A stretch of DNA of 64,000 nucleotides from Utricularia gibba (GCA_002189035.1 NEEC01000018.1:310001-374000), one strand, 5' to 3'; counted from the stretch's first letter, positions 1 to 41,410 are shown. The notes: generated by a model from the sequence alone, not told the origin. Numbers and translations are program-made.

Positions 1-313
1 CGAATTTAAAAAACCTTTGGATTTAGGACATGTGTTGGCCAAGGCTCATGCCCAATCTTAATGTTTTCAACTTATTTTATTTTGCAATTTATTTTGTTGT
101 AAGAGATAAAGTCCTTTGTTTTTTTTTTTCTTTTTTTCCTGGAAACTTGCATTTCCCAATTCACCCTTATTCTCTATTTATCACTCTCTTCCCCACCCAG
201 CTTGGGTTTGCATTGCACCCCCGTAGATCCGCATTCGGCATAACCAGAAAAAATAAGAAAAAAAAGATCATCCTTTGAATTTCACTGATCACATTTCGCT
301 GTCCGTTGCGTGT

Positions 314-1697
314 ATGGGTCGATCGCCGTGCTGCGAGAAAGTGGGTTTGAAGAAAGGGCCATGGACGCCTGAGGAAGACCAGAAGCTTCTTGCTTACATT
401 GAAGAACACGGCCATGGAAGCTGGCGAGCCTTGCCGGAAAAAGCTGGTGTGCACTCATTTACCTCTTCCGGTGCATTGAAGACATTTTTATGGATGCCTA
501 ACTGCTTCTTGGTGTAGGGCTCCAAAGATGCGGTAAAAGCTGCAGATTGAGATGGACGAACTACTTGAGACCTGATATTAAAAGGGGCAAATTCAGTTTA
601 CAGGAAGAACAGACCATCATTCAGCTTCACGCTCTTCTTGGGAACAGGTGAAAATTTGTAGTTTTATTTGGGTTAAATTGCCTTTCCTTGATTGACTGGG
701 GATACAACAAAATTGGAATAACGCAATGCAGTTACATTGAGTTTTTTTTTTTTTTTTGTTTCGTTTGCAGGTGGTCAGCCATAGCCACCCATCTTCCTAA
801 AAGAACAGACAATGAGATCAAGAACTACTGGAATACTCATCTCAAGAAGAGATTGACGAAAATGGGGATCGATCCTGTAACCCACAAGCCCATGAATGAT
901 GCGCTTTTGTCGAGCGATGGGCAAGCCAAAAATGCTGCAAATCTGAGTCACATGGCGCAGTGGGAGAGCGCCCGTCTCGAAGCTGAAGCCAGATTGGTTC
1001 GTCAATCCAAGCTCCGTTCCGCCGGATCCACTTCTTCCCAGGTTCCATTGTCAATTAATTATGTTCTCTGAAAAGAAAAAGGAAATTTTTTGGTGTTTAA
1101 TCGAAGAGAAATTTGTGGATTCAGACCCAGAATTCGGAAATGGTCTCGTCTTCAAGCCAATTGCAGAAGCCTGTTGAGCCAATGCCGTGTCTCGATGTGC
1201 TGAAGGTTTGGAGTAATGGGGTCTGGGCGAAAGCGGGTGCCGTCAATGGCGGCTCTACGGCAGTGGGTGAAGTGGAATCACCGACATCGACTCTGACCTC
1301 TGCCACGAGGGCAGGGGACGGCGGAGCGACGAAGGAAAAATCCGGGAACTGGAAACACTTGCCGGAGTTCAAATCCGGGGGGCCGAATCCAGTAGCGCTC
1401 CAGGCATTTCAGGAAGCTTCGCCGACATTCACGGCGGCGGCGGTCTGGCCGCCTGGATCTGTCAGATCGAGTCCGTCGGAGAACGGTGGTCCTTATCCCA
1501 ACTTCGTGGAGAAGTTCACCGACCTGCTACTTAGCACCTCCCCCGGAGAACGGTGCATCGGCGACGAATGCCTGGAGTCGGAGAATGTCAGCGGCAGTGG
1601 GGGCGGGGGCGGCCATTATTTTGAAGACAGTAAGAACTACTGGAATAGCATTCTGAATCTGGTGAATTCGTCGCCGTCCGACTCACCCATCTTCTGA
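314..1697 (+). CDS. MYB16/MYB106-like: R2R3-MYB transcription factor, subgroup 9 (MIXTA-like), ~368 aa, 4 exons
   Basis: Exons 314-446 (133 nt), 518-647 (130 nt), 771-1041 and 1125(or 1131)-1697, all with GT-AG junctions. Starts [27 protein letters not shown]3 reads [28 protein letters not shown]. Carries the SG9 motif [14 protein letters not shown] and the C-terminus [26 protein letters not shown] typical of MYB16/MYB106/MIXTA-like proteins. Confidence 0.95.
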
Positions 1698-9672: not shown

Positions 9673-10552
9673 TATTCCTTTATTTCAAACTATTAAGAAT
9701 GAGTTACTTCTTTAGATAGATATAATAAGAATTAATTGGGTTGAGACATGTTACAAGATAATGGCAGATGATTGGATTAATATTTCATCAACAACTTTAG
9801 TCAATTTTCTAATATATAGTCAAAATGTCATTGTTTTTTACATATTTTTGGATTTTTCTTCCAAAGTTAAACATGCAATACATTGTCGTTATTATTTGTG
9901 GAAGTAGTCGAGTGGATTAGAGATAAAAATGTTGTTTAGGATATCATGAATAATGCAAATAATTATTATAAAATCGGAAGATTACTTGAGGAATACTATG
10001 GTATATGTTTTTGGCCATCTTGTGATATGTGTTGTGACAATCTAATGTTCATGATATTGGAATGCTACCTACTATTAAGCTTATTATGAAAAGAGCAATG
10101 GTTTTCTTTCTAGATTTAGATATAATCATGGTCGTCGGATTGTATGATTGAGGTCAAGGAAAAGTTGGAGAGAAATCTTCACATCTTTGGGGATTAGATT
10201 TGGATCAAATTTTCTTGCACTCTTTAGTTTTATGACTCATCAAGATGGCCTACAAGCACTTGCATTGAATACGGAATTTTCAAACTTAGTATTGGGAAAA
10301 GACAAAAAAGGTAAAGATTTTAAAGATATTGTAAGAGATTTTAGCTTTTCAAATGATTGTGAAGTGTTCATCCTTAAACCATTATGAAAGATTATATGGT
10401 CTATTTATGAAAATTATTGAGAAGTGTTGGGAAAGTTAGTTTAGTAAAAAAATTCATGCAACGACTTATTTCTTAAATCCGTACCTTCAATACCTTCCAA
10501 AGCATACAAGTGAATTGGAAAAATTTCTTTATCATGCCATTGATGTATTTGA

Positions 10553-12005
10553 TGTTGGGTTTCTCGTAAACATCACATGTCACAAAAGCAGCAGAATTTA
10601 AAAATTTTTGAGAAACCCTCAACGCAAATCTTGGAATACGGTATACATCATATAAGGGGATGCTGAAAATATCTTTCAGTGCACTCTGTTGTTCACCAAC
10701 CGCCAATAGTAGATGGCCTTTATGGTATCCACACGTGGAGCACTCCGTCAATAACCTTCTCAAAACTGTAGAATGCTGGTCGATCTCCTCAGGTGCTAGT
10801 AGAGAAATTCGCCCCCTTATGGATCAGTTTCAAAAAGCACGAAGATGATGGAAGATCTGTAGATCTAAATCTTTTGATAGATATTTGGTAACATATCAAA
10901 TAATATCTCCATAAAGATCTTATCTTGTGGAGATATGCATATGTTCAAAATCTTATCTATATGAGATCTTTTATTTTGAGTTTAATCAATATTTATCTCA
11001 GAATAACTCTCTATTTAATTTATCCACTTTACCAATTACATCTCATGTAATTGTGTCATAGGCTTCTTCAATCAAGGCCATAATAATGGATTTATTAATT
11101 AACTTTTAATTAATCAAATCCATCATTATCGATCATGAGTGATGTCTAGCAACATATCATGATCCCCAAGATATAAGAATAATCAGATGAACTGATTGAG
11201 CCTTTCCATGACCAGCCACCATGCAATGAACAACTTTCATCATACTTATATCTCATTCGATACCAGAACATGGGTATGTGTCTTTCTGTTATATCAAACT
11301 TATAATTACTTTCAAACACTAACACTCAATGATCTATTCAAACAATTCGAGTGTTATTACCCTAGGCCCAGGACTTACTGTTAGGCTTTGATGCATTTAC
11401 TTGAGATATGATCTCATCACTAACATGAGTGATGAATCCTTTATTGATCAATCAACTATCTCCAATCTTAAGGAGTCACATCACTACTCATCCAAATTAG
11501 GCAAGCCATGGTTAGGCTCTCATTAGTAATGAGCAAAAATGTGGGCTTAAGATCAAGATAACTTTGTTGACCTCAAGCCTAAGCTTATTTGCACGGTTGT
11601 CATATTCGAGATCTTGCTACTGACACTTGGTTAGCTTCCCATAATAGCATCTCGAAGATGAGTCATCCAGTGAATCGATTCTCTAATCGACACTCATACA
11701 TAGGTTCTAGTAATCTCATTACATCAATTGTGAGAACCATTGCCTAAACAATTTAAGGAACTCAATGTGTGCCAGCTTATCCGTATTTGTGATATCCTCA
11801 TTTCACAAATATGCTAGCCATGGAGTTTTTAACTTGAGCATAAGTGCTTGAAGAATCTCACATTATGATCTCATCATAATTTCTATAGCACATAGATCAA
11901 GTAAAGGATTTTATCAATGATATAAATTTGATCACAATTCAAAGTAAATATCAAAAGATAAGATTTGCCAATGAGTTGATTATCTCTAAAACACATGCAC
12001 CAACA
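10553..12005 (-). mobile_element. Solo LTR (1453 bp) of a Ty1/copia (Angela-like) family
   Basis: TG...CA ends and a perfect 5-bp TSD TTTGA (10548-10552 and 12006-12010). Colinear and highly similar to the PBS-adjacent LTR at 45163-46675. Confidence 0.95.
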
Positions 12006-12399
12006 TTTGAATGGTTTGAAAGAAACAATATTGATGAATATGTAAAGGTGTGGACGAGTCCTCCTCATAAGAGTTCGAGTTGAGTCAAATGAGTCAAAGA
12101 CGAGTCTGTTGATTTGCCCAATCCAACCCATCATGAGTTGATCCTTGACTCAATCTATGTACGTGTTAATAAGTAATAGAAGTAGAATCAATTAATTAGA
12201 GAAAAACACTTGATGAAACAAAAGAAAAATTATCTAGAATACATACTTAATCAACAATTTCTATCTTTTCACTTCATTCTTTATCATCTTCGTCACCTGT
12301 TATCAAGTTTTGTAACTTCTATTCAATTTGCAACCATTACATTAAGTATACACAAGCCTCCAAAATTGTTGGTGCCACACACAATCTTTTCATGGTAAG

Positions 12400-15300
12400 A
12401 ATTCATCCACGAGCAGTGAAAGTGTTCTTAGAAGCAATCGTAAAAGTTGGAGGTGTGAGAATATTCTTGGCAACCTATGACAGAATAGAATAATGGGAAG
12501 ATTGATTCTTTCAACATTAAAGTATATTAAAGTTGTCCCTCTTGTTACCATATAATTGATGTATTGCATCCAACATCATTGGCCATTGTTCCCTTGCTAG
12601 AAAAAACATAGACCTACACCATAGATCAACAATCATATGTAGTTGATACCATGACATTGTCATTCTCAACTTCTGATTGAATAGATTTCACAATATCTAC
12701 ATTAAGATTATACAACTCATATAAGTGTTCTAAAGTTGAAAGATCAGTCTCATGTAAATTTTTAGCATTCAAATCCACACTAATCATGCTACGAAATTAT
12801 AAAAAGCACAATGCACATTCAAATCAGCAAGCAAACCTAATCCTTGAACTTGAAGATTAATCATATTGGCCACTAGCAGCAAAGAAGTAATATGATTATA
12901 ATATTTCAAAAACTTTGAAATCATTTTTTAAATCATTAAAATATTTTGAAATGATAAAAAGCATTGACTTCTTCCACTGGCATTTCAGGAACTCTCGATC
13001 TAGAGTCAATGTGAGATGACATAGAACTTGAGGTTCTTTGATATCCTTCCCTTTGTTGAAACAAGGCTTGAAGACCAAACTTCAACGTGTCGCTCATTGT
13101 TGCAAGTTGAGCCAATACTTCTGAGTTGTCCACTCCATAGACCGCTTTCGCTGTTGCAATGTTTCCACCAGGCGGTCTATAGGAGTTGTCATAGCAATTG
13201 GCTGTGGAATAGGAATTAACAGCCATTTGTTCAATGAGTCTCCGAGCATCAGCACTGTGACGGTTCGCTAATAATGATCCATTACAAGCGGCATCCATCT
13301 GTCCTCGGATCATAGGAGTCAATCCTTCATAAAAGTGCTGCAAGATCTGGCCTTCAGTGAGTCCATGCTGAGGGTAGGAGTTGCAAATTCGGTTGAAATG
13401 ATCATAATACTCCTGCAAGTTTTCTCCTTCGCTTTGCATCATAGTTGTTAAGGCTCTCCTTCTAGTTGAAGCTCTTCTTAGTGGTGCATAGCGATCCAAG
13501 AATTTTTGAACCATTTGCTCCCATGTGGCGATCATGAAGGTGGAAGTGCATTGAGCCACTTCAAAGCTCGTTTGGTAAGACTGAAAGGAAAAACTCTAAG
13601 CTTGACTTGATTCTCTGTGGCTCGCTTGGGGTGCATGGATGCACAAGTCGTGTGCAACTCACATAGATGATGGTAGGGTCATCATTTTCCCTTCCAACAA
13701 ACTTTGGAAGCGTCTGGAATAAGTAAGGATGTAGTTCATAGTCTTCTTCTCCATCAAAGATGATGCATAAGGGACGGTCTGAATGATTTGCAGTGATTTC
13801 TTCCTTGATGGTCCATAGTGCTGGTCCACGGTTAGCGGGAAGTAGTACTGGAAAGTTTCCATGAGGTTGTTCGCCCTGGGTCTCAGGCACTATTGGTACT
13901 CCAATGGGTATATGCGCTGCCATGATGTTTCTAGTGGTTGAACAGGACATCTGCTTTCTCTTTTTGGAAAGAAAGGTTCGTTCCACCTCTTGGTCCAAAG
14001 GGTATAGAACTTCTAGGTAGGATCTCAGGCTTGGACGAACCCTTGGTGGATCTAGTTGCATAAAAAGAGAAAAACAGAGCAGAAATAGAAACAAGAAAAA
14101 GAAACTATAAGGAAAAGAAAGAAAAAGAAGAAAGAAAAAAAAAAAAATAAAAGAAAACTAAAAAAGAAAAACGAAACTCACACACACAACACCAAACACA
14201 AAAAAATTTAAACTCCCCAGCAACGGCGCCAAAAATTTGATGCATGTCATTTTCAAAACAAATTTTAATATTTTTAGAAATCTTAAAACACAAAAGCGTA
14301 GTACGGGTGTCGAACACAGGGAGTTGTTTTTCAGTGAAAGATGATGTTACACTAAATATAGCTATCACGATTTGTAAAAAGTTTGACAGGAGCCAAATCA
14401 TAGACACATCACCGGAGTGAGTTTGTAGCATAAAGATGGGAGAAACGTAAATAATGAAGCTTGAGTAAGGGAATAAGAGGGGTTTTGAACAGAGAACTGA
14501 AATGAACGTAAGTGATGAACCTCAAATAAAGTGAATGTTCCTGGGTATGGAATCTTGTCCAGCTATGTTCGTTGCATCTTCACTCTTCTTTGATCTTCTC
14601 GAGTATTCGGTTAGAGTAATATGTAATTTCCTATCCTCCCTTACACTCTCTTGCAAGAAGGCACGAGAATAGCCCGATGTTGTTCCTACTTGGACGAATG
14701 TCAGAATAAGAGGTCCTACCGGCGTACCCTCACGGCCGAACTGTCCGCGTGTGCCTGAGTGTTGCCAATGACCCAATGAGTCCAGATATGAGGTCACTAC
14801 CTATCCATTGATCCTGAGGTACATCCACATACAAAATGTTGTCTTCCTCCTACAAAAAGGGCACGAGTTGGTGCTCTCTACCTTGCTCCTCTCCAAAACT
14901 TGCGGGTAATGATCAGTTAACCATGAATCTTGAAGAAGGAGACTGTTACAGAAAAACTGCAATATAGTCGCACGAAGACATATGAAACCCGTTCGGATTC
15001 AAAGAAGAGATGAAGATAAGCTGCGAACAGCCATACAAACTAAAGGAAATGAAAACAAGGTTCTAGAGAGAAGCTAGAGGAAAATCCTCTAGAGAGAGAA
15101 ACAAAGTCTAAACTAAACTAACTACTGCCTCGCTTGTCCGAACTAAACTGAGCTGAACTATTTTGCCTGATATTTCGTGTTCCTCTGGTTCTACTAGAAA
15201 GGTTGGGACACCCCCGGATCTATGTTTCGTTAGCTTATCTTCATCTCTTCTTTGAATCCGAACGAGTTTCGTATGTCTTTGCACGACTATGTTGTAGTCT

Positions 15301-16650
15301 TTCTGTAGCAGTCCCTTTATTCAAGATTCATGGTTAACTGATCACTACCCGCGAGATTTGGAGAGGAAACAAGGTGGAGAGCACCAACTTGTGCCCTTTT
15401 TGCAGGAGGAAGACAACGTTTTGTCTGTGGCCGTATCTCAGGATCAATGGACAAGTAGTGACCTCGTATCTGGACTCATTGGGTTATTGACAACACTCGG
15501 TCACACGCGCGCAATTTGGACGTTCGTCCAAGGAGGAACAACATTGGGCTACGTGCCTTGTTGCAAAGAGAGTGTAAGGGAGGGTAGACAATTCCTTACT
15601 CCTATAACCGAGTACTCTAGAAGACCAAAGAAGAGTGAAGACACAACAAACATAGCTGGGCAGGATTCCAAATCCAAGAACCTTCACTTTATTTAAGGTT
15701 CATCACTTACGTTAATTTCAGTTGTTTGTTCAAAACCCCTCTTATTCCTTTACTCAAGCTTCATCATTTACGTTTCTCGCACCTTTACGTCCAAACCATT
15801 TACAAATCGTAACAATTGTATTTAGTGTAACCTCATCATTCACTGAAAAACAACTCTTTGCGTTCGATACCCGTATTACGCTTTTGTATTTTACGAGTTT
15901 TAAAAATATTAAAATTTATTGTGAAAACGACACAAATCAGACATCTAGAATCAAATAAAGCACAACTAACATAGGATTTATGGAAGTTTTCAGAGATTTC
16001 ATAATAGTTCAATTATTAGATGCATTATCAAATGTAATTGAGAAAATACGATCAAATATATCATATTCATGAGATATATCAGTAATTATAACGTACACCA
16101 ATTTGAGGATTATCACAAGGCCGAAACCCAAGGATTCTTTTTTCAATGATCCAATTAGAATTAATCCAATAAACAGTACTTAGAATATAGTTTTCATTAG
16201 TTATATCACGTCAACTATCACTAGTCAAATGAAACTTACATTTAAGTGATTAAAATAGAGAAATCAAAAGTTCTTTTCTTTCATTGAATTATTCTAAACA
16301 AAGCCTAATAGTTTTCTTCCAGAAAAAGGGACAAATAAAGGCTGTATTTTGTTTGTAAAAAATTCAAAATCAATAGATTCTCAACTTCGAAAAAAGATTT
16401 TTCATTAGTAATTAAAACAAACACATGGTCAATTTTAGCCATATTTGAATCAAATGTAAATTTGAAACTAATATTACCACCAACAACATCCATTTTTGGC
16501 TTTGTAAGATTTGAAGTATCTCGATCATGGTTTTTGTTCTTAATATGACATACAAAATTGGTAGTAGAACCACGTTTACCATGATTAGTACAATAGAGAT
16601 TTGAAGTATCTCGATCAGGGTCATGGCAGTGCAATGAAGATGATATGCGC
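12400..16650 (-). mobile_element. Second degenerate hAT transposase (Ac/Tam3 type), interrupted by the Athila-like fragment
   Basis: Minus-strand remnants: GSTTNFVCHIKNKNH (BED-like, ~16530), YWINSNWIIEKK (~16140-16180), FDRIFSITFDNASNN (~16010-16056, catalytic motif), ANMINLQVQGL (~12840-12875) and VAKNILTPPTFTIASKNTFTARG (dimerisation domain, ~12405-12474). Confidence 0.7.
12955..15939 (-). mobile_element. 5'-part of an Athila-like Ty3/gypsy element: fold-back LTR (14238-15939), PBS, frameshifted gag, truncated after gag
   Basis: PBS TGGCGCCGTTGCTGGGG (plus 14215-14231) is the tRNA-Asp type used by Athila. gag lies in ORFs 13561-14094 (LYPLDQEVERTF) and 12936-13559 (TWEQMVQKFLDRY...QSEGENLQEYYDHF...QILQHFYEGL), with a frameshift near 13560. 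Confidence 0.88.
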
Positions 16651-19600
16651 TTGTTCTAGGTTAAATGAGCTCCTCCAGCATCTCCAACATATTCATCCTC
16701 CATTTCCACAACATCGACGTCAATGTTATCATTGTGCAGTCGTGGGACAGAACGGTTCAACAATTCAAAGATTATACACAAACAGAAATATAAAAATCGA
16801 GATAAAAGATCATAAGTAGTGAAAAGCATCAAAATACAAAAGAAATCATGTTGAAAATCCCATTGAAAACATATAGAAAATTATAGAAATGAAACTATTT
16901 CAACCCCTAGATGCGATATTCGAAAAGTTAGTGTCAAGGTCACAATACTATTTTTTGTTGGCTTAGGCCTGATAATTAAGCTTGATAAAAAGACAGATAA
17001 TGAGTCATTACATTGACCTAAAGTAGTTTTTGATATAAAAGAATTGAGTTAATTCAATGAGTAGATTTGTACCTATGAACGTCTACTCGACTAATACTCT
17101 TTTCCACACGAGTACGATTCATGAGTCGACTCACTACAGGTCAACTTGCCAAGTCTATAGGTTAACCCGTATTTGTGTCCACCTCGATGAATATGTGATA
17201 CAAATGAGTTCTTTTAGATATTAAGATAATATGTTTGCAAAAATTTCCATTTCAACAAATTGTTAAGAATAATAACTTACAATCAAATATGATCTATTAT
17301 ATTTTTTAAATTATATATATATATGTATAGCTCAATGATGAAGGTCATTTGGATCAAATATCTTTTATTAAAGGATCTTGTGGTGAAGATTCTTGGACAA
17401 ACAAATTCATCTTTAGGTTTTGAAAAAAATTAGAAAGTTTTGATAATATATACAAATAAATATAATTGACTGGAGCAAAATGACTTATTGATCTAATATT
17501 TGTGTAATATAATAGCAAACTTGGATAAATTATATTTTTAATATTTAATTTATTGATTAAATTTTGATTAATGTGTAACAAATTTATGTGTATTTAATTC
17601 GTAGATAACATTTCGACAGTGAGTACTATAATCCTATTGATGTTGGTCATATTGATGAGATTGATAATGGGATTATTTGAAAATGATGATAATTCATTTA
17701 TTGATTGGATGATATAGAAAATGGTATTTATAAATAGATAAATGCAGAAAAACTTGATGATGATTAATTAAATGATGGTTAATTCAATTTTACTTTGTGA
17801 ATTTGATATTTTATGTTTTTCAAATTATTGTAGTTTTGTTGATGGCTAATTGATTATATTATTGATCGTACAGATTTAGACTTATCGATTTAATAAGAAA
17901 TTCAATATGATGACATTTAAAATTATGAAATTCTCAACATCATTAATTTAGAGATAGATAATAAAGACGACAGTGGATTCAGTAAAAATAAACATGTTGG
18001 TAATAAGGATATGGAAGACTTAGATATTCACGCTTTTATTAATAGAAATGCATAAGATGTGCATTTTTAAATTTATTTAGTATTATGTAATTGTTATTTT
18101 GAAAAATATAAAATATTCATATTAATTTCGAATATGATCGATCGTGCACCAGTCAGGTTCTTATTTCTGGTTTGAAAACATAGTTATAATATGCAAATTT
18201 ATTCAAACATACACTATTTTGCAAACAAACTTATTTTCTCTTCTGTGATTCACCAATTTTTCCTAGTTCACAAGGAATAATTAGGAACTTCACAGAATTC
18301 GCTCTCATCTCCTTGGGGGTTGTACGTCTTCACCTATAATCTAGAAGAAAATACCTCATTCATCCTCTTTCTTCCTTATATTTGTGCCCAAAAAGTTCTG
18401 GAGGTTGATGAGATTTTTCCTTTCTTTGTTATTTATCTGGGTCAAATCTGTTGGAAGATAAACTTGACTTAGAAAGGTTAAACTACTAGACGGAAGATAA
18501 GACTAGGAAGTTACAGCAGATACTAAGAAGTTCTTAGGATAAATATATCAAACATGTATGCACTAAAACACTGATATTGAATGCAATAATTTTACGTAAC
18601 TTTTCCTGGTATCTTTCCTTTGGAGCATTTCCTCAAACATATGCTGTGCAGATTTGTGTTTCGTAATCGACCAAAACCTGCAAACAAGTATACCAGATAC
18701 GATCACTCACCGAAAATACACAATTCCTCCAACAAAATCGCCAAAATGCGGTAATAACCACTAAGTGCATAGACTTGCAAGGTGATGTTGTTGGGAACCT
18801 CGTCGGACAAATGCTTGACGAAAGTCCTTATCCGGCTAACTTGGCAATAAAGGAAGGTTTATCATATTATCCGCACTATTTAAACATGTCCAACAGGCTC
18901 TCTACAAGGTATTCCTTATCGTATGGTCTACTCCTGTCTTTACCGTTGTCGGCTAGAGCTTAACACGATTGGACAATTACAAGAGAGACAACAAGGATAG
19001 CACTATCTCATTTGAGCGCAAATCAATTTATGACATTGTTTGTGGGTTCAGTTTTATAAAGAGAATGCAAATTCATCTGTTAGTAAGAAATAATACACCT
19101 ACAACTGCTTGTAATTATCGGACCTTCCATCCATAAAGCGTGCCTGGTGTATTAAATATACCACATGGACGGCCTCTTTCGCAAAATATCCCACTTATGA
19201 AAAGGTGTTTGCTGAATTCCCACCATTTAGAAAACTCAACTGAATACTCTTTACTTTTTGTTTGTTTGTTAAATATCCCTATTTAAGTCAACAGAAATAA
19301 TAAAATAATAATTTTTTTTAATATAATAAAAATAATTAATAAATACGTTTACATATATATATAGGCTTCGTTGTTGACAACGCTTGATGAACATAAATTA
19401 TAAACATGCAAATAAATAATGATTACAATATACAAATATATTCAAAATAAATCATAAATTTATATTCGATCATATTAATAATTAATAATTGAATGACAAC
19501 GTACAATATAAGTTCATAATGAATAACAAATAAATACTTAATTCAAATAATTTCAAATTCTAAAATGACATTTAACATAAATTTAAAATAAAGAATAAAA

Positions 19601-19684: not shown

Positions 19685-22600
19685 GAGAAAATTTCAAATT
19701 TACCATTAATGTTTTCTCTAAAATTCATTTTTGTCATCAAACTTTTACGATTTCATTTTTACCATTAAACATGTATAACTTGTTTCATTTTTACTATTAG
19801 AGTATAAACCAATTTAAAAATATTGAAAAACGGCTCAATTCAAAAACCGTTCAAGAATGATGATTTTAAGTTAATAAGACACTTGCTTCTTCAGCTTGAC
19901 TCGGGTTTTGCTAGGAGAGATCTGACTTTAGTTAGTGAGGCTGAATTTGATAGAGTCACAACATTAGAGAGTGAAATGGATGGTCATGACATCCGTATAG
20001 AGATGAGTAAAGATTCTTAAAATTGGGCAAGCTTGGATGATCTTGTATTTGTTGAAAATGTTGTTGAAAGTCAAAAAAATGTTTCAAAAATTCTTGTTGA
20101 AAATGATAAAAAGGTTGTTGAAGTTGATGCTTGTTTTTTCACGGACAATGTTAATGAAAATGACAGTGAAAATGATTCTGAAGAAAGTGAAGATAAAGGT
20201 GTTTGTGACTCTCATTGCAGTGATGAAGAATTTTGTTGTGAAGAAGATCATGATTTTACAAGAGAGGGTGAGGCTTTTAAGAAGTTTGTAGATTCATGTG
20301 TAGAGTCTAGAATTAATGATGAAAGTATTGTGAGTGTTTGTCAGAGCTTGAGAGATAATATTGGTTTTGAAGGTAATATGAATGATATGGACTCAGGTTA
20401 TGATTTGGGAAGTCTCCAAGAGTTAGATGAAGAAGAAATCAGCAAGACTCCTCTATATAATCTTAAGAGTGATGCTTAAGATCCCAGTTTGGTTAACGGT
20501 TTGGTTTTTAACTCTAAAGAAGAAGCAAGATTTTCCATTCAGACAATGGAATGAAACATGGCAAAGATTTCATATTTCGCACTGACATACAAAGAGTGAT
20601 TGTTACATACAGAGCCAATGGATGTCCATGGTGCATCTATGTTTCCAAAAAAAAAAATGACAAAGGTTGGCTCATAAAAAGTTTCAATAACGACATCAAG
20701 GATGTGCTAGAAGTAGAGCAAATATTGGTTTAAGAACCAGCTATCTAGCAAAGAAATTTCTGCATAAATTCATTGATAATCCAAAACTTGTTTTGAAGGA
20801 GTTTAGGATGGATTTGATTAAAAATTTACGAACTGAAATTTTGAAATCAAAGGCCTTTAGAGCAAGGAAAAAAGCATTACATATTTTGAACAAGATTGAT
20901 TCTGAACAATGGAGTTTGATTCGAAATTATGTTGCTGAGATATTAAGATCAAATCTTGGGTCTACAGTGCATTTGCAGCCCTTTGATTTTGAGAAAACAG
21001 AATACAAGAGATTCAAGAGTTTGTATGTTTGCTTGGCGGCTTTAAAAGAAAACTTTAAATCCGGTTGTCGGAAAGTTGTGGGAGTTGATGGATGTTTTCT
21101 TAAAGGAGGCTTTAATGGCCAATTATTAACTGATGTTGGAATAGATGCTAATAATGAGATTTTTTCGATAGCATATGCAGTTGTAGAAATTGAAAATCAA
21201 TGGAGTTGGAAAGAGTTTCTTGAATTACTTAAGGAAGATCTTGAGGTTGTAGATGAACTTGAATGGACATTTATTTCTAACAAACAAAAGGGGTTGTTGG
21301 AGGCTTTCGAATAATTGATGTCAAATGTTGAAAATAGGTTTTGTGTTAGACACTTGCACTCTAACATGAAGACTGCTGGTCATAGTAGCATTAAACTAAA
21401 AAATCTTCTCTAGGCAGCAGCAAGAGCAACAAAACCTGAGGTTTTTGATGGACATATGAAGGAGCTGAAAAAAACAGACTTAGAAGCTTACAAATGGTTG
21501 CAAAAGAGGCCTGCAAACCAATGGAGTAGAGCGTTTTCCAGGATGACCAATAAGTGTGATACATTGCTAAACAATGCGTGTGAATGCTTCAATAGTGTGA
21601 TTGTTGAAGCGAGAGAGAAACCAATTCGTGGTTTATTAGAAGGAATTCGTAATTATCTCATGACAAGAGTGACAACAAATCTTGAAACTGCACAAAAGTG
21701 GACAGACACTATTTACCCTAGAATTCACCAATTTTTTGAAAAAATCATGGAAGAAGTTGGAAATATGATTCCAATAGGTATGACAAAAACAATTATCAAA
21801 TCATGGGACCATTTGAACAGCACACAATGAATATGGAAATAAGACTTGCACTTGCAGGAAGTGGGAGTTGATAGGAATTCCTTGTAAACATGCCATATTA
21901 GTCATGTGGGTAAGGAAGGAGAGGCCGGAAGGCTATATAACTGAATGCTACACTGTTTCAACATACATACGATGTTATAAACATGCTATAATGGGAATCA
22001 CTAGTCCCACTTTTTGGCATAAACTTAATTTTCCACCACCTATCCCTCCAATGTTTGAGAGAAAAAATTGGGAGGCCTAAAAAACTGAGGAAAAAGCAGA
22101 TGGATGAACCTCCTGGTAATCCCCACAAGCTTTCTACAAAGAGATTCAATAATCAGTGTAGCCGTTGTAAAGAAACTGGACACAATGCCAAAAGTTTCAA
22201 GATGGCACCTGCAACGCAACCTGAAGATGAAGGCCAACAGGTTGTTTCTAATCTCAAAATGAAATCAAATAAAAAAATGTGGTAAATTGTATATTTCAAT
22301 TATAAATTACATGTTTTTATTGTGCACTATTTTTTTCTTTGAAATAGTCCAAGAAGCCAAGAGGAGATAATGTGAGAAGAGGGCATGGGAGAGGTGGAGG
22401 TCGATGGAACAGTGAGCATTTAAGGCTAAGAAATAATGTCATTGAACACGTTGAAGTTGGCTCATCCAGCATACATGGAGCACCTAGCCAAAGGAAAATG
22501 ACAAAGGTATTTAAAATTGTGTGGTTTTTTGGTATAAAGAAAATTAGCTTTATTGTTATTTATAGAAAACCAAAATGCAACTAGTACGTGGAAAAAACAA

Positions 22601-25500: not shown

Positions 25501-26044
25501 TTCACATCGTCTCTAGTATATCTTTACTAGAATATGACAATAAATCTTGTGAATAATAAAATCATTGAAATTTTTTTCACACACAAAAGATATGTACATA
25601 TGTGAATGAAGTAGTCATTGCACTTGTGAAATGAATGAGAATGTAGATGTAAAAAATGGGAATGAATATTTGTGTAGAGGATATGAAAATGTATAAAGAA
25701 ACAAAATCAATAGGTAAAACTGAAATGAAAATTTATGTATGATATATGATTTATAAAAAATCTTTATGATATTATATTTACTAGAATAATAAATTTAACT
25801 GTTATAAGTTTTTACAGCTATTTTTTTTCTATAAACTAATGATATAGTTGTTGGATATAGCCATTGAGATCCAACGGCTATTTTTTACATTAAATGTAAG
25901 GATAGTTGTGGTTTACATAAACCACGGTCGTGCCTACTAAACCATGCTCTCCATAGGTGTGGGTTATGTAACTAGAGGTGGGCACAGTTACGGGTTGACC
26001 TATGTGACCCATAGCTCAACCTGTGCTGCATGGGACAGATCATT

Positions 26045-26978
26045 TGTTGCATGTCATTTTCTCAAAAAAATTTAAATATGTAAAACGTAAAACAAAAAAG
26101 AGCATAGTATGAGTATCAATCTCAGGGAGTTGAGTTTTGCGAAAAGTGTTTTTTAGAAAACTTTCACGAATTGTCACAGATTTGTAAAAGTAGGTTTTTG
26201 AAGTACAAAAATAAAAGATACAACCTAAGTAATGGACCTTGACTAAGGGTTGCAGTTCCTTGGAAATGGACTCCGTTTCCTCCTTTTGTCTATCCTCGCT
26301 TTAGCTTTCACTGATTCCTTCCAAATAGCTAGTTATATGAGCAAGGAATAGCCTAATTTCCTTTACACTCTAATTGACTAGGAGGTATGAGAATAACCTC
26401 ATGTGATTCCTCCTTGGACGATTAAGAAGACAAGAGGATTGACGTAGATTGTCTTCAAAACCAAATTGTGCTAAGTGTTCTTCCTCCATTGGGGGAGAGG
26501 AAGAACAAAGTTCTAAGTGCCAAAATAAAATGTCAAAAGTCTGAAAATAAGTGTTCCAAGTCCCTTTTATCTCACTACTCACGTGCATTAACTCCTTCTG
26601 ATACTCTTCCCATCATTCCTTCTATCTTGCGTGTGACACCAGTTTTCCCTTGCATGCAAGTTAGCACTCAATCACTGCTGCAAACTCTAACTTGCCATAA
26701 GTCAAGGGCCTTGACTAGTGTCAGTCTTCCATCCACAATTGTTCCAAGTCGCGTGCAAGGCACGAAAAGTCAGAGTCTGACTTCTTGCAACACTCCACGA
26801 CTGCCTCCTGATATATTTCGGTCAAAGTGCCTAAAAAAGACAAAGAAAATATATAAAAAATAGAAAAATATGAATTTTCTAATAAAATCAATACTTAACA
26901 ATAAGTCTTCTAATTTGGACGTCTTAATAATTAACAATTAATAATACATAATGAACAACTAGAAAATGACACTTAACA
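26045..26978 (-). mobile_element. Solo LTR (934 bp), Athila-like
   Basis: TG...CA ends and a TSD with one mismatch (TCATT / TCATC). Homologous to the solo LTR at 35524-36780. Its minus-strand start TGTTAAGTGTCATTTTC matches the LTR start at 40879. Confidence 0.85.
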
Positions 26979-28774
26979 TCATCCTTACCTATACTGGATG
27001 GGAATGAGTCATCCATACCCGTATTGTACGGGTATCGCCTGAGTCACCCGAAAACAAGAACAGGTTGACCCACTAGATTGGGCTAACTTGTAAAAATCCA
27101 ATCAAAATTGAGATAAATTTTGGGCCAGATCTAAGATTTGGCCCATTGTAAGCCCCATGCTGGGATGTGGAGTAGCCTTCCATTGTAAGCCCTAGGGCAG
27201 GATCTTAGCCATTGCCTTGAAACGCTTTTCAAGTTCTTTTGTACGTCATGAGAACTTCAAGATTTTAGTGAATGTGGGTTGCAGAAAGGTCGCATGGATA
27301 TTGCGAGTTCCTCTTTCTTATAGTTTCAGTGGCACCCATTCATTGTTTCAATTTTTTTTAGCATTCACCTTTTTGTTGACATCCTTCATCGCTATGTTTT
27401 CATCATGCTTGTAACTCACCTTGCTTTGATCAAAGATAAAACATTTTGCACTAGTTGGACCATATTTTTTATCCTTACAATCTTCATAAAATGCATATTC
27501 GAGGGTTTGAAAAGTTACGATTAGTGTAAACCAATTTTTACTCACATTGGTCAGAGGTAGGAATATTCCTTGTTCAAACCAGCCATTACTTGAAGGTCAT
27601 GGTGAAAGTGTTGGTTTCAATGCTTCATCACTACAAACACTTGATGCAGATGAGGGGAATCACAAGTAGAATGAGTTATAGTTGGCATCACATTATTACA
27701 AAGTCTGCACAACAATAAGTAGAAAATTTCATGTATTCTTCTCAAAACAAAAACTTCTATGGTTGAGATATATCATCCCCATCACCCAAAAGATCAAGAA
27801 GTCATAATACAAAAACTCCATTGAGAAGGCTCAAAAGCGCCCAATACTAGAAAACCGAAATCCTACTTGGATTCATCTCAAAACCTCTAAGTGACGAATA
27901 GAACCAGAAAACGCAGATATTCTTTGAAAGCTAGTTGAAACACAGTAATTTGGTTTAATCCACCGAAACTCCCACATCAAGCCAAGAGTAGATGAAGAAG
28001 ACTGGAAAAATTACCTAGAAATAAAAGTGCTATTTGCGAGCTAACTGATCAGCATGGTTTGCTATCAGGAGGAACATGTGTGTTCACGCTGGACAATTGA
28101 TTCAGCGGATATTTCCCTATTGCACAACAGGGTTCATGTAGGGAGTGCAGGAGTGCGCTCTTGTGTATAATCGTGTGTAGTGAGGGAAAGGGGCAATGAT
28201 CCCATTGAATGTCTGGATCAAAATATACTATTGCAATCATTAAGATACATTTAAAAAAGTTGCTAACTCTGAATATGATGTCATTCGAGATATGATGATA
28301 AAGTTTGATAAATATTGGAATGATTATATGAAGATTCATCCATTTGGATCAAGAGATCCAAGAAAAAATTGCAATTTGTGAGTTTTTGCTTTGAAAAATT
28401 ATTTTCAAATGACCATGCATGAAAGGTAATTGATACAAAAACAACTTTGAATAATCTATTTATTTTTTTTGGACAAATGAGTGCTTCATTAGACACTATG
28501 TCTTCAACTTCTTTAGAAAAAACACATTCAAATTCAGTTGAAGAAGGTTGTTCCTCAATCAATTCAAAATCTTTTCTCTATGTACGTATTCTTTTTCTTT
28601 TATTAAAATTATGTATTTGATATCAGTTGTGCTTATATTTCAATTGCACTATTTGAAGGAATTACAAACAAAGAAGTTGCAAAGAGTACAAAGGAAAACT
28701 GTATCTGATTTAGATATACATGTAGCGAGGGATGTTGTGGGAAGCGATGTAGATCTTCTAGATATATATTTCTG

Positions 28775-28810: not shown

Positions 28811-29975
28811 TGCGTGTTGACTTGTTTTATGTTTATGATTTTTGTTGCTTATCAAAAATAATGAATTGTTTTTAATCTATTATTTATAGCACAAAAATTT
28901 TCTTTTTTTTATAATATAGAAATTACAAAATTTTTAATTATGTTTTAGTTGTTTATCTTATAGTTTTAAGTACTTTTATGTAATTTAGTGAATATATGGA
29001 TTTTGTATTCAAATGGGCTAAATCCTTTGATTTAGCCCATTCTATGTTACTAACGCGTTTTGAATCTAGTAGCAACTTCCAAAAAATCAAGGGAGACAAT
29101 AGTCTGCAAGTCAGGGCCAGGAGTAGTAGAACTATCAGAGATTGTAATTTCCTTGGGAAATGAGAGAGGATAAGATAATTTTGAAGGAGAGAGAATCGCA
29201 AAGAGGGGGGCAGGTAGGAGCTTCGGGAGCTTCAATAGCAACGACACATAGGATGCTCCTCCAACAATATGAACACCAATCAGAAGAGGAGAAGAAGGAG
29301 GTTATCGCGAAGAAGAATCCCCATCTTCAAGAACACTACCAAGATCCAATTCAGCGCTATTGTTCCATGCTGTGAACAATAGCAGACGAAAACAGAACAT
29401 TTTATATATTTAGTTTTCTGAAACCTTTGCTTTCTTTGGTTATTTGTTTGACAATGTTGGGGATATTTTCTTCAGTTTATGACTATGAAACCTTGCTTTA
29501 TTTTCCATACACAAGTAGCTAAATTTAGGGAATGCCTTAAGGTGTACAATGGTGATGTGAGGCTAAGGTTAATAATGCAATTGATCTTTGTTTTTTAGTT
29601 CTTGTTTCTATCATTTCATCCTAAGGGGGGGGGGGGGAACAAGTAACTTTACAACTTGGATGCTTGATTTAAAGGTAAATCAACAAATCAAGACTGGATG
29701 ATAGGTATTAGTCCTCGATAGAACTAGTAGAACTGGTAAACCTAGTTCTATATACTTTGTATGTGGATAGATCTAATTGCGTAATTGGTGATGACCTGGG
29801 ATATTAGTTTTGAACATCTTTTGAATATTGATTGTTGTTATGATAGCTTCACTTCAAAATTATTTTGATAGCTTTTTCTCCAACAATAGGCAATGAGCCA
29901 TAGTCCATGTGATCACTCTATTTTTCCTCTCAACAAAATCATTATATGATGGTGAGTATTAAATGATAGTATGAT

Positions 29976-31300
29976 GATGTGTGACATTCCATAAATTTTT
30001 TTAAAAGAATTTAAAACATAAAACACATCAAGTGTAATACGAGTATCGATTATAGGAAGTTAATTTTCTAAAAAATAATGTAGTTAGAAATCGGATACAA
30101 ACTATCACAATTTTGTAAAGGGTTTATGAAGGTGAATGATGAAAGAAACTAAACTAAAAAGACTATAAGGTAAGGAACAAAGCAAACTTAATCAATGACC
30201 CCTAAGTAGAAGTATTGCTCTAGAACTAGAATCTTTTCCAACTATATTCACTCTATCTCCACTCCTCTCTTGTTCTTTTGGGTACTCGGTTTTAGAATAA
30301 GGATTTGTCTAGAGAAACATGAAATATGAAATACAAGTTTAGAGAAATATGAAACACAAATTTAAGCTAGAAACTAGAAAGAGAATGTATTCTTTTGTCT
30401 ACATTGGCTAGCTCATAAATTCTACTACTAGTTTTGCATGTATTGCAATTAATCTTATTACTACTTTGATTTTGTAACACAATGCTCATTTTTTCTATCA
30501 AGGCTCATTATTAATATCTTATGTCTTTTAGAAATCATGGAATATATTTCCAAGATCTTGTTTGTCATCTTGTGTTGGCTCGTTTTCAACATTCTGTAAA
30601 ATGTATCTCTCCAACAACACACTTAAACACAACTTAATTTAAGAAAAGATTAAATGCAACACAATCAAAAAAGATAATTACCCTAATATAAGTAAAATCT
30701 ACAACTTATATTATTAACTTCTAATATAACAACTTTAATCACAGTTAAACACCAAAAAAATATAAAAAGCAAAAATAAAATTGATGGATGGAAATTTTTT
30801 AACGTGTCGCATGCCTACAAGCATTCTCCATAAGCGAATAAGTGTATTCTGAACATGCAATTAACACAATTCACAAAGAAATTAATATAGTAGTATTACG
30901 TTCAAGTCAATCCATACATGACATACATTTTTTAGTTGTTAGTCATATATGTAAACTGGATTAAACAAAAGAGTTTGATTTGTAAATAAGTTTCTAGTCT
31001 AACTAATTTATAATATTCATCTACTAGCTTCTAAACCATCAAGCATAAAACATAACGCATAACTCTTGTTCTAAAGTCGTACATATAAAAGCAACAAAAT
31101 CATAAGTCGCAACACCTTTATCCGAGCACAACATTTAATCCAATTGGTCAATAAAAACATGAGAAACCATAGTCGTTCAAATGCAACAAATTAAATATAA
31201 AAAGTGCTGAAAATGAAAATGCATGGAGAGGAAAAATGTTTAGTAGATTCTCCATCAATTTTTGCTCTTTTCGTGTGTTGCAGGACTTCTTTTCCATTTA
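29976..31300 (-). mobile_element. Two adjacent degenerate Athila-type LTR pieces (~29976-30781 and ~30782-31300)
   Basis: 29976-30310 resembles the arms at 14238/15939, and 30650-30780 resembles the ordinary U3 start at 40879. 30782 onward (TGATGGATGGAAATTTT...) resembles the arms of the 5255-6557 palindrome. Confidence 0.6.
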
Positions 31301-35523: not shown

Positions 35524-36780
35524 TGTTGCGTGTCATTTCCTCAATGAATTTTAATTACAAAGACATAGAACACAAATAAAGCGTAGTACGAGTGTAGATC
35601 GCAAGGAGTTGAGTTTTGCAAAATGTGTTTTGTGCAAAACTTTTATAAATTGTCATGGGTTTGTAAAATAGGTTTTTGAAATATAGAAATAAAAGATATA
35701 ACATAAGTAATAGATCTTGATTAAGGGAAGTAGTTCCTGAGAATGAGATTCCATTTCCTCTTTTTGACTATTCTCGCCTCGGTTTTCACTTATTCCTTCC
35801 GAATAACTGGTTATAGGAGCAATGAATAGCCTACTTTCCTTTACACTTTGACTGAAAGGGAGACATGGGAATAGTCACATTTGATTCTCTATTGGACAAT
35901 TGAGAGGACAAGAGGATTGCTGTCGATTGCCCTCAAAATCGAATTTTGTACATGTGCCCAACTATTGCCAATGACCAATGAGGGATACAAGGTCACTATC
36001 CATCCATTATCGCGATATCCTGGTCACAGAGAATTCGCTATTTACCTCAAAATATTAGGGTTGTAGATGGTATTCATCACCTTGCTTTTCATCAAAATCC
36101 GTGAGAAGTAGCATGCAATTCATGGACCATGACTAGGAGACATTACAGGAAGATTGTAACATGATGCATTGAAATATGTAAAATCTGGAAGAAATTCAGC
36201 AAAGAATTGATATTGATGCTCAAGACGTGGAAGGAAACTTCATCTATTCCCTGAAATTAGAAAGGTTTAGTCATGAATCATCATGAAAGCAGAAAACGAA
36301 AACATAAAGCTAAAGTGCCTCTCCCTTAAGTGGAGAGGAAAGAACCAAAAGTTCTAGTTCCAAAACGAAGTGAGAAAAGGTCCGAAAACAAGTGTTCCCA
36401 ATTGTTCCAAGTTTCTTTTAATTCACTTCCACATGCATTAACTTACTCTACTTCTTTTTTATCATTCCTTCTATCTTGTGTGTGTAGTCAGCTTTCCCAC
36501 GCATGCAAGTGCTCAATCATTATTGTAAACTTTGACATGTCATAAGTTAGTGACCCTGACTAGTGTCAGTCTTCCGCCCACAATTGCGCCAAGTTGCATG
36601 CAAGTTATGAAATGTTAGGGTTTGGTCTGCTACAAGTCTCCTACAACACTTGAAACCTGCCTCTTGACTTTTTTGGTGAAAATACATGAAAAAGATAACA
36701 AAAATAGGATTTGTCTAAAAAATTAAATACTTAATCCTAAATTAACACATAATAAACACTTAAAAAAATGAAACATAACA
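35524..36780 (-). mobile_element. Solo LTR (1257 bp), Athila-like, inserted in the Tekay-like gag
   Basis: TG...CA ends and a perfect 5-bp TSD GGGTT (35519-35523 and 36781-36785). Host gag continues across the site. Confidence 0.93.
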
Positions 36781-40800: not shown

Positions 40801-41410
40801 GTTAGGTACTATCAGAGTTATGGATTGTCTATCTGTTTTCATACTTGAGGACAAGCATGATTTAAGTGTGAGGGAATATGTTAAGTGTCATTTTCTTATT
40901 ATTTATTAGGTTGTTTTTATGTTTAAATGTGATTAGAAGTGTCTAATTAGGAGTCTATAATGTGAGATTTGGGTTTTTATTTAGTTTAGGGTAATTATCC
41001 TAAATCTTGTATTTTATCTATTAATTTTACTAGTTTTATTTGAGTTTTTCTAGAGCCGCACACGTGGCAGGAAGTGAGAGAAAGAGGCCATCATATGGCG
41101 ACAAATTGGATCTTCCCGAGCTGACATTCCCTTGATTTCCGGAAGACTGCAGACGCCTAATCATGAGCCTTAGCGTGCGGAATACGGGAGTCTCTGACAG
41201 GCGACATCATTAGCGTACCAGTGTCAGACGTTGCTTGCAAGTCATCCCAAGTTCAACAGAATCACAAGAACACGAAATCTCATACCCTCATTAAAGTGGG
41301 AGTTCTGTTCAGACGAAAAGCGGTAGTTAATTTAGTTTTCCCTTTCGTTTTCTCTCTCTAGAGGAATTTTCCTCTAGCTTCACTCTAGAACATTATTTCA
41401 TTTTCTTTAG
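37880..41410 (+). mobile_element. 3'-part of an Athila-like element: integrase C-terminus, env-like/extra ORF region, PPT and truncated 3' LTR
   Basis: [21 protein letters not shown]...[13 protein letters not shown], followed by the post-pol motif GCGCTGCACGGGAGGCAACCC. ORFs 38455-39111, 39121-39309 and 39349-39804 (VFEFYATF). PPT-like AAGTGTGAGGGAA (40864-40876) precedes the LTR start TGTTAAGTGTCATTTTC at 40879. Confidence 0.85.

Follow-up and report, generated by a model that had tools for sequence, protein, structure and literature searches.

A host MYB gene lies near the left end of the 64-kb window (the whole stretch of DNA that was analysed), and further in the minus strand carries a broken gag, a PBS and an LTR in which the start of U3 has given way to an inverted copy of the U5-side (Table 1). 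The surrounding sequence is rich in nested and truncated elements, among them two solo LTRs, copia fragments and a truncated LTR abutting an integrase fragment.

Table 1 Features of the fold-back LTR, of the element remnant that it belongs to and of the LTRs used for comparison.
Feature	Position	Strand	Length (nt)	Remarks
Host MYB gene	275-1697			
gag	12936-14094	minus		broken, C-terminally truncated, in one part; just beyond the PBS
Second GACAT	13018-13022			
PBS	14220-14231	minus		TGGCGCCGTTGC
Linker	14232-14237	minus	6	AATTTT, AT-rich
Proximal arm	14238-15027	minus	790	U5-side of the 5′ LTR of the minus-strand element; ends ...GCATCA at 14238
Spacer	15028-15225	minus	198	ordinary mid-LTR sequence (U3-side); contiguous and collinear with the proximal arm
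Distal arm	15226-15939	plus	714	inverted second copy of the LTR U5-side
GACAT	15940-15944		5	first 5 nt of the right flank
Solo LTR	26045-26978	minus		related family; flanks TCATT/TCATC; U5 end at 26045 by collinearity with the PBS-side arm
Short LTR-like unit	~29975-30811			comparator
Solo LTR	35524-36780	minus		related family; perfect 5-bp target-site duplication GGGTT/GGGTT
Truncated LTR	40879-~41425	plus		starts with the ordinary U3 start TGTTAAGTGTCATTTTCT; carries a homologue of the spacer

The 1.7-kb inverted repeat is real, old and far above chance. An earlier, sequence-only reading of this DNA had described 14238-15029 and 15223-15939 as reverse complements, and self-alignment within the window upheld this with slightly narrower inner bounds (14238-15027 and 15226-15939), the arms agreeing at 620 of 711 aligned sites (87.2%; 78% counting gaps). 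They differ by nine indel events of 1-21 nt, 82 nt in total, and their K2P divergence is 0.143, with transitions and transversions at 64:27 (2.4:1). Comparison of the arms by blastn gave 78.3% over 780 columns; an ungapped repeat search found four collinear blocks of 136-222 nt with 84-89% complementarity, together with a 38-nt block at 87%; and Smith–Waterman alignment of the region with its own reverse complement scored 1372, against 25 ± 4 for shuffles. The longest run identical between the arms (33 nt) is located at their inner edge, so the inner breakpoint is sharp, while at the outside the symmetry extends as far as the end dinucleotides, TG at 14238 and CA at 15939, which bears out the claim that it ends at LTR termini on both sides. 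Among the transition differences, the A/T allele is found 31 times in the proximal and 33 times in the distal arm. Such symmetric decay is easier to reconcile with equally old arms than with an older target LTR, and it agrees with an inversion within a single element (route (b) below) or with a burst of insertions.

Polarity was set by comparison with the four other ATHILA-like LTRs in the window, one of which, the solo LTR at 35524-36780, sits within a gypsy gag-protease-RT fragment, and because it could be fixed in this way, the structural part of the sequence-only reading proved right. Read on the minus strand from 15225 to 14238, the spacer and the PBS-side arm are collinear with the middle and the U5-side of ordinary LTRs; together they form a 988-nt LTR that begins in mid-U3 and runs to the U5 end, the ~350 nt of the U3 start being absent. 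The truncated LTR at 40879 shows what has been lost. The ordinary U3 start (TGTTAAGTGTCATTTTCT and AT-rich sequence) is absent, and an inverted copy of the PBS-side sequence (714-790 nt) occupies that place, a replacement that had been proposed and that comparison with all four window LTRs confirmed. The spacer had likewise been taken for ordinary LTR sequence; its match at 41320-41413 was found again and extended by sensitive alignment, in which 15037-15208 aligns to 41413-41245 of the truncated LTR (score 163; shuffles 33 ± 5), the outer ~17 nt (15209-15225) having no match. The related LTRs of the window, each tested for a hidden fold-back, contain no internal long inverted repeat and are thus ordinary, as had been stated.

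LTR ends in this group are near-identical terminal inverted repeats of ~18 nt (15 of 18 positions match in the solo LTR at 26045), and 14238-15939 has the same TG...CA structure with such repeats. On the plus strand the distal arm reads as the 3′ part of an LTR, and its ...AAATCA at 15939 directly abuts non-LTR DNA. Both outer ends of the structure are integrase-type termini, as would be equally true of two ordinary LTR ends, and on its outer side the distal arm stops at a natural LTR end that borders the flanking DNA. Poly(A) signals were uninformative for the U3/R and R/U5 boundaries.

At 12 of 13 positions, the PBS TGGCGCCGTTGC with the next base, T, agrees with the ATHILA PBS TGGCGCCGTTGCC (tRNA-Asp/Asn; motif from bioRxiv 10.64898/2026.03.20.713144). 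It is not duplicated, in agreement with the sequence-only reading: PBS-like TGGCGCCGTTGC occurs once in the 64-kb window, at the left end only. Also as described there, gag lies beside one end only, with Pfam Retrotrans_gag (1.7e-12) detected on the minus strand past the PBS and Ty3_capsid under its cut-off. The same layout of LTR, linker and PBS (...GCATCA, AATTTT, PBS) was common to all eight loci of distant gag relatives. The gag reading frame is interrupted by two or more frameshifts, and alignment to some of its relatives also shows a few stops; ~3-5 breaks were counted, where ~7 would be expected from the divergence of the arms (Poisson p ~0.15, an estimate), and a clear shortfall would have meant arms that had diverged ahead of the insertion. 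A HMMER search with gag returned 2333 relatives at E ≤ 0.001 (best 1e-43), and since the homology to relatives covers 13062-14034, the left limit of element-derived sequence can be placed within 12925-13062.

Between the gag remnant and the host MYB gene, pol (protease, RT, RNase H and integrase) and the ATHILA-specific downstream ORF are absent, and the window contains no second LTR copy that could serve as the 3′ LTR and no PPT-3′ LTR junction. With pol and the 3′ LTR missing before the MYB gene and gag broken, the locus has undergone large deletions. Judged by its surviving parts, the element is a dead ~3-kb remnant of the ATHILA lineage (Ty3/gypsy), consisting of LTR, PBS and broken gag. 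It has in common with that lineage the PBS TGGCGCCGTTGC(T), an AT-rich 6-nt linker after ...CATCA, an LTR of kilobase size and a Ty3-type gag. It differs in being a remnant without pol, the ATHILA-specific downstream ORF, PPT or 3′ LTR, in the replacement of its U3 start by the inverted U5-side copy, and in its gag, whose nearest proteins in public collections are only 40-46% identical and show a flat distribution.

The sequences flanking 14238-15939 are AAATT and GACAT, which offer no target-site duplication to inspect. The second GACAT falls inside the interval that holds the left limit of the element, and the pair could be a direct repeat that encloses a block of 2.9 kb, or could be due to chance (~13%, an estimate). 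The right flank had been assigned to a hAT element; we take its resemblance to hAT to be one of motifs only, and the assignment was not confirmed, Pfam being negative in 20 flank ORFs. A word search with the left-flank ORF yielded no candidate, the flank motif string occurs in no paper of the literature searched, and no further copy of the flank was found in the window or in the loci of gag relatives. The two flanks resemble one interrupted transposase frame; the resemblance is not statistically strong, and Pfam is negative. Together with GACAT on both sides, the interrupted frame is a weak hint of a discrete 2.9-kb insertion, which, if true, would favour the capture of an aberrant cDNA.

Within the 64-kb window neither arm was found a second time, nor was the junction; the two arms, side by side, are the sole copies of their LTR family there. 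Long inverted repeats were found at none of ~10 LTR-PBS junctions of distant gag relatives in eight other plant assemblies, and the loci of eight distant gag relatives showed no nucleotide similarity to the LTR. Scans of viral and metagenome contigs with gag gave no close relative; exact 23- and 25-mers conserved in both arms were absent from metagenome and prokaryote contigs; and an exact look-up of eight window ORFs, two of them spanning the inner junction, gave no match. A survey that covered six Brassicaceae species, with 2,322 intact ATHILA elements and 4,124 solo LTRs, contains neither ‘palindrom’ nor ‘inverted’ in its text.

We consider it most likely, at about an even chance (probability roughly 0.5), that the fold-back is a one-off, non-heritable structure in a dead ATHILA-lineage remnant, formed when two ordinary LTR copies of the same family were joined after integration. 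The two copies would have faced outwards, and a non-homologous breakpoint would have joined them at 15225/15226, removing the U3 start. Two routes could lead there: (a) the minus-strand element landed within or beside a same-family LTR of opposite orientation, and a deletion followed, or (b) both LTRs came from a single element that underwent an inversion with one break in each LTR. A subsequent deletion would have taken pol, the downstream ORF and the 3′ LTR. Antisense nested LTR insertions able to form LTR hairpins have been directly observed for EVD (PMC11624286). That the adjacent arms should be of the same family and its sole copies in 64 kb would be a coincidence if they came from two independent insertions, which counts against these, and no other trace of a second element survives at the locus.

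The sequence-only reading had drawn its main argument from the exact stop of the symmetry at CA. The argument holds against a simple fold-back of DNA; the outward-facing ends of two LTRs, a cDNA by-product and a palindromic LTR are all compatible with it, and it is no proof of palindromic transposition, because two natural LTR ends explain the stop equally well. As it stands, the locus adds another rearranged transposon remnant to a repeat-rich region and is of minor importance; its value is that of a clean case in which two natural LTR ends imitate a ‘palindromic LTR’. Autointegration was considered as another source of joined LTR sequence and rejected, because its products have a CA end linked to internal DNA; the inner junction here connects two internal LTR positions, with the CA ends outermost.

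More tentatively, reverse transcription may itself have produced the fold-back, which would then have come in as a finished, aberrant cDNA. Possibly, though we would not favour it, minus-strand strong-stop DNA primed plus-strand synthesis at an ectopic mid-U3 site: with respect to the sense strand of the element, the distal arm has the sequence of minus-strand DNA from the U5 terminal nucleotide, like minus-strand strong-stop DNA. The product would run inverted(U5-side), mid-U3, U5-side, PBS, and PBS-mediated transfer would turn it into a 5′ LTR with two U5-type ends, which could be integrated or, as an incomplete fragment, be trapped in a chromosome break. One event would account for arms of the same family and equal age, for a PBS present only once and for a stop exactly at the terminal nucleotide. 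The near-identical ~18-nt terminal inverted repeats at both LTR ends also speak for it, since an inverted U5 end would then look like a U3 start to integrase, as does the compact block of 2.9-3.0 kb, possibly GACAT-flanked. Retroviral reverse transcription is known to include self-priming of strong-stop DNA as a side reaction (for example PMC6088434). In Arabidopsis, the virus-like particles of ATHILA contain mainly short LTR fragments, which have been read as aborted strong-stop intermediates (PMC7197481).

Several observations weigh against a cDNA origin. The 198-nt spacer is U3-side sequence in sense orientation, whereas classical self-priming leaves no U3 between the arms, so a rarer, intermolecular and non-homologous priming would be needed. 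There is no TATA box in the 1.7-kb region in either orientation, and the inner end of the arms therefore cannot be shown to be a transcription start. The GACAT pair has the ~13% likelihood of chance given above, and a 5-bp duplication made by integrase is not expected, because the block has no LTR end on its left. No integrated plant example was found in the literature searched. Self-primed minus-strand strong-stop DNA arises as a side product of retroviruses, suppressed by the nucleocapsid protein, and is known as an unintegrated dead-end hairpin without U3 between its arms. The structure described here shares with it an inverted duplication of the U5-side (putatively R-U5) that starts exactly at the U5 terminal nucleotide; it differs in the 198-nt U3-side spacer and in being chromosomal and joined to PBS and gag. 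An aberrant cDNA of this kind would be a dead end, since the 3′ LTR remains ordinary. If one was inserted here, the locus is a fossil of a side reaction of reverse transcription, the mis-priming of strong-stop DNA, which to our knowledge is otherwise known only as a retroviral side product and never as an integrated copy; it might then be, though this is doubtful, the first case in a plant of an integrated fold-back cDNA for which minus-strand strong-stop DNA had been the primer.

It is highly improbable that the locus belongs to a heritable ATHILA-type sub-lineage in which both LTRs are palindromic and transpose as such, from an RNA with inverted(U5-side) in its 3′ U3. Both outer ends are of the integrase type, with U3 and U5 termini that are near-identical inverted repeats of ~18 nt, arms passed through replication cycles could diverge in a way that fits both the 13% divergence and the symmetric decay, and the loss of the 3′ LTR at this locus leaves some room for the idea. 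Against such a lineage stand the lack of a second copy, 3′ LTR or target-site duplication in the window, the ordinary form of four related window LTRs and ~10 distant relatives, and a survey of more than 6,000 ATHILA LTR units that makes no mention of a palindromic LTR. Its founding would require entry of the fold-back into the 3′ LTR, which no simple origin supplies: in standard LTR replication the 3′ LTR is the template of progeny U3, and a fold-back confined to the 5′ LTR is therefore not inherited. Hairpin RNA is a strong trigger of silencing in plants, and an RNA with an intramolecular duplex of ~700 bp would be expected to provoke it strongly; LTR hairpins and silencing have been treated for EVD (PMC11624286). 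The proposal that this LTR architecture had transposed as a palindrome was not supported: the element is a remnant with no copy in the window, and a 5′-LTR-only fold-back is non-heritable. Were the junction to recur elsewhere, it would reveal an LTR retrotransposon that replicates with a built-in long hairpin, and this would bear on how plants first recognize new retrotransposons.

A fold-back duplication at the DNA level, by template switching or hairpin repair of a break in the 5′ LTR, is very improbable: the short spacer and sharp inner breakpoint are typical of such inverted duplications and arms of equal age fit, but copying would naturally continue into PBS and gag, and its end exactly at the LTR terminal nucleotide would have to be accidental (~1 in several hundred). 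Palindromic artefacts happen in long-read assemblies and have near-identical arms, whereas 13% of sites differ between these, transitions outnumber transversions by 2.4:1 and there are nine indels, which marks them as old genomic sequence and not an assembly fold-back, and the structure lies 14 kb from the window edge in continuous sequence, its junction outside any shared direct repeat that could mislead an assembler, so that a chimeric palindromic read or mis-join is scarcely credible.

The predicted RNA fold of the region has a minimum free energy (MFE) of -1057 kcal/mol, against -424 for shuffles, with ~650 inter-arm pairs, and in this model a read-through RNA across both arms would fold into an imperfect hairpin of ~650 bp. 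The suggestion that the element makes its own dsRNA was not supported: its own promoter would be located between the arms and would transcribe the PBS-side arm only, so dsRNA would need transcription reading in from outside. Given such read-through, a passive role as a hairpin would, by analogy with known systems, be the sole plausible present-day activity, and the hairpin could be a substrate of Dicer-like enzymes and a source of RNA-directed DNA methylation aimed at the family, as in Mu killer or antisense nested EVD LTRs.

Inverted repeats within LTRs also occur in maize Sireviruses, where individual palindromes are reportedly short. PMC4728375 describes a palindrome-rich region in the cis-regulatory part of U3 that recurs over thousands of elements, and these palindromes have been proposed to form hairpins and attract siRNAs. 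What the two cases share is inverted-repeat structure within an LTR; they differ in that ours is a single pair of 0.7-0.8-kb arms in one gypsy copy, absent from related LTRs. Synthetic ATHILA hairpins (bioRxiv 10.1101/2023.08.02.551486) were set aside as a natural parallel because they are constructs.

Mu killer (Slotkin et al. 2005, cited in PMC11624286) is a maize Mutator element duplicated in inverted orientation. The locus has in common with Mu killer and the antisense EVD LTR hairpins the close inverted copies of transposon terminal sequence, which could give a hairpin RNA and small RNAs that silence if transcribed through. It differs in that the copies are fused as a seemingly single LTR, 198 nt apart with the LTR ends outermost, and in that the arms are old, being 13% diverged. 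The long, foldable inverted transposon duplication that characterizes systems of the Mu killer type is present, with arms of 714-790 nt at 87% identity.

A repeat search paired 14238–15022 with 15232–15939 as an inverted repeat of four collinear ungapped blocks (136–222 nt, 84–89% complementarity), with an additional block of 38 nt (87%), and 14238–15939 aligned to its own reverse complement with a Smith–Waterman score of 1372 (25 ± 4 for shuffles). The inverted repeat claimed in the sequence-only reading is therefore present, and self-comparison put arm identity at 78.3% across 780 columns by blastn and at 87.2% (620/711 aligned sites) in the gapped alignment that set the arm bounds (see table). 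The aligned sites differed by 64 transitions and 27 transversions (K2P = 0.143), and nine indels of 1–21 nt separated the arms. The outer edges were a terminal TG at 14238 and a terminal CA at 15939; because the longest identical stretch of the arms (33 nt) lay at their inner edge, the inner breakpoint is sharp.

Features of the fold-back region and of the surrounding window.
Feature	Position	Remarks
Proximal (PBS-side) arm	14238–15027	bounds by gapped alignment
Spacer	between the arms	198 nt, by gapped alignment
Distal arm	15226–15939	bounds by gapped alignment
Copia fragment	10552–12031	
MULE transposase fragment	20033–21314	
Solo LTR, ATHILA-like	26045–26978	flanks TCATT/TCATC
Short ATHILA-like LTR unit	~29975–30811	
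Solo LTR, ATHILA-like	35524–36780	flanked by a perfect 5-bp target-site duplication (GGGTT)
Truncated ATHILA-like LTR	start 40879	
Expansin-like gene	58339–59280	DPBB and Expansin_C in a single 313-codon ORF

The ATHILA-like LTRs of the window (edges at 14238, 15939, 26045, 26978, 35524, 36780 and 40879) shared near-identical terminal inverted repeats of ~18 nt, TGTT..GTCATTTTC, far longer than the usual TG..CA, and this motif was over-represented in the window (23 matches versus 12 ± 3 expected). As both LTR ends carry these repeats, terminal similarity alone is uninformative on orientation, and we relied on longer collinear matches. The PBS-side arm ran collinear with the region at one end of the solo LTRs, whose opposite end matched the start of the 40879 LTR. 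The spacer, read from 15208 to 15037 on the minus strand, matched the 40879 LTR at 41245–41413 in forward orientation. From these matches, 15225 to 14238 on the minus strand is a contiguous ordinary LTR running from mid-U3 to the U5 end and lacking ~350 nt of U3 start, as gauged against a 40879-type LTR, and 15226–15939 is an inverted copy of its U5-side part. The structure proposed in the sequence-only reading, with U3 replaced by an inverted R–U5 copy, is thus borne out with two corrections. That reading also compared the region with related LTRs of the window; these are indeed ATHILA-like but belong to other families, being just 72–78% similar over short patches. The arm is also just a putative R–U5 unit, as no TATA box was found in the fold-back region.

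On the minus strand, 14238 is followed by AATTTT and then by the PBS TGGCGCCGTTGC, a site occurring once within the window. This junction fits the ATHILA signature of an LTR terminus, an AT-rich 3–6-bp linker and the PBS TGGCGCCGTTGCC (ATHILAfinder, bioRxiv 10.64898/2026.03.20.713144), with 12 of 13 PBS bases matching. Beyond the PBS lies a gag in which Pfam recognised a Retrotrans_gag core; a full HMMER search returned 2,333 gag relatives, the best only 40–46% identical; the junction type (..CA, 4–5 AT-rich bases, TGGCGCCGTTGC-CGGGGA) was present in all eight gag relatives fetched with flanks, which came from eight other plant assemblies. The 5′ junction and the gag match therefore assign the element to the ATHILA lineage, but as a remnant only: gag is broken by at least two frameshifts and shows a few stops when aligned to some of the relatives, and no protease, RT, integrase or second LTR was found between the gag remnant and the host MYB gene at 275–1697. 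The latter is R2R3-MYB-like, with two Myb repeats in separate exons.

Of the one-off origins considered, we give a probability of roughly one half to the structure having formed after integration, by the joining of two ordinary LTR copies through either of two routes. In route (a), a minus-strand element would have landed in or alongside a same-family LTR of opposite orientation, with later deletion of the U3 start and the junction. In route (b), part of a single plus-strand element would have been inverted, the two breakpoints falling one in each of its LTRs; this yields gag′, PBS′, arm′, spacer′, arm, right flank in the order observed, with arms of equal age. A tentative alternative, route (c), is an aberrant cDNA, in which the distal arm, as minus-strand DNA, would have primed plus-strand synthesis in mid-U3 and produced this LTR in a single step. 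On the element's sense strand the distal arm is exactly minus-strand DNA from the U5 terminal base, like strong-stop DNA, and the idea has some footing in Arabidopsis, where ATHILA particles hold mainly short LTR fragments interpreted as aborted strong-stop DNA (PMC7197481). Decay of the arms was symmetric, the A/T allele at transition differences falling 31 times in the proximal and 33 times in the distal arm, and a small outgroup comparison, made by eye from the alignment, was also balanced; this fits arms of equal age, as under (b), (c) or an insertion burst under (a). The two arms are the sole copies of their LTR family in the 64-kb window. The locus certainly underwent large deletions, and these, with the many nested and truncated elements of the window, favour (a) or (b).

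A heritable lineage of palindromic LTRs transposing in that form, which the sequence-only reading had raised as a possibility, is very unlikely and has no support. No internal inverted repeat above shuffle level was found in the four related LTRs of the window, no 3′ LTR of the fold-back element was found in the window, and ~10 LTR–PBS junctions of distant relatives contained no fold-back (best inverted scores 26–86), the exception in score being one 102-nt palindrome (score 204). Neither 'palindrom' nor 'inverted' occurs as a word in the ATHILAfinder survey, which covered 2,322 intact elements along with 4,124 solo LTRs (bioRxiv 10.64898/2026.03.20.713144). In standard LTR replication the 3′ LTR is the source of the U3 that progeny receive (PMC7197481), so a fold-back confined to the 5′ LTR would be lost in the next cycle. 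The exceptional palindrome, perfect and probably low-complexity sequence, lies at 16251–16352 of locus L001 (GCA_047302245.1), within an LTR belonging to one of the distant ATHILA-type relatives; two PBS sites separated by 7.9 kb at the same locus suggest tandem elements.

A DNA fold-back through replication or repair is very unlikely, as it is disfavoured by the exact terminus at CA; the exact stop had been offered earlier as an argument against a plain fold-back, and there it holds, but it is equally expected from two ordinary LTR ends facing outwards. An assembly artefact is hardly credible, as an assembly fold-back would give near-identical arms whereas the observed divergence is old and transition-biased.

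GACAT occurs directly right of the distal arm (15940–15944) and at 13018–13022, within the interval holding the end of the gag remnant; the pair, which would bracket a 2,917-bp block and is ~13% likely by chance, may be a direct repeat or coincidence. The right flank (15940–16146) encodes the peptide stretch ...SITFDNASNN... and the left flank (12784–12960, minus strand) ...VANMINLQVQGLG..., in a compatible reading frame; we take these motifs to be hAT-transposase-like, although the hAT identity given to the flank in the earlier reading was not confirmed, with Pfam recognising nothing in the flanks and a protein word search likewise giving no confirmation. Together with the GACAT pair, the motifs hint weakly at a discrete insertion of the 2.9-kb block. 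Further into the right flank, 16507–16531 and 16597–16621 form a 25-nt direct repeat (96% identical, 90-nt spacing), and the 109-codon ORF containing it had no family match.

RNA predicted across the whole region formed a long imperfect hairpin with ~650 inter-arm pairs and an MFE of −1057 kcal/mol, against −424 for shuffles, so a transcript through the whole region would be expected to fold in this way. A transcript initiated by the element itself would begin between the arms and thus lack one of them. Transposon inverted repeats of this kind that trigger small-RNA silencing include antisense nested EVD LTRs (PMC11624286) and Mu killer (as given in PMC11624286), and palindrome-rich regions of maize Sirevirus LTRs are siRNA hotspots (PMC4728375).

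Among the other LTRs, the solo copy flanked by GGGTT is inserted where the gag zinc knuckle lies in a gypsy gag–protease–RT fragment on the plus strand (36781 to ~37860); at ~37860 this fragment jumps to a C-terminal portion of integrase. Around the solo LTR flanked by TCATT/TCATC, the DNA to either side (25960–26040 and 26985–27090) looks like one interrupted short repeat in which GGGTTGACC-like motifs are abundant, and 17090–17190 resembles this repeat. An ORF at 39349–39804, which ends 1 kb upstream of position 40879 where the truncated LTR starts, scored below threshold against Pfam PF20167 ('Putative plant transposon protein'); it may be the ORF that ATHILA elements specifically carry downstream of pol, in which case the 40879 LTR would be a 3′ LTR. 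Several pieces of a single copia family were present, 89% identical between 10555–12005 and 45165–46675, and 87.5% identical between 42372–42875 and 63499–64000. Within the copia region 42372–48100, gag and pre-integrase domains (42444–44043) lie on the minus strand and RVT_2 (46746–48069) on the plus strand, suggesting two elements or one rearranged element.
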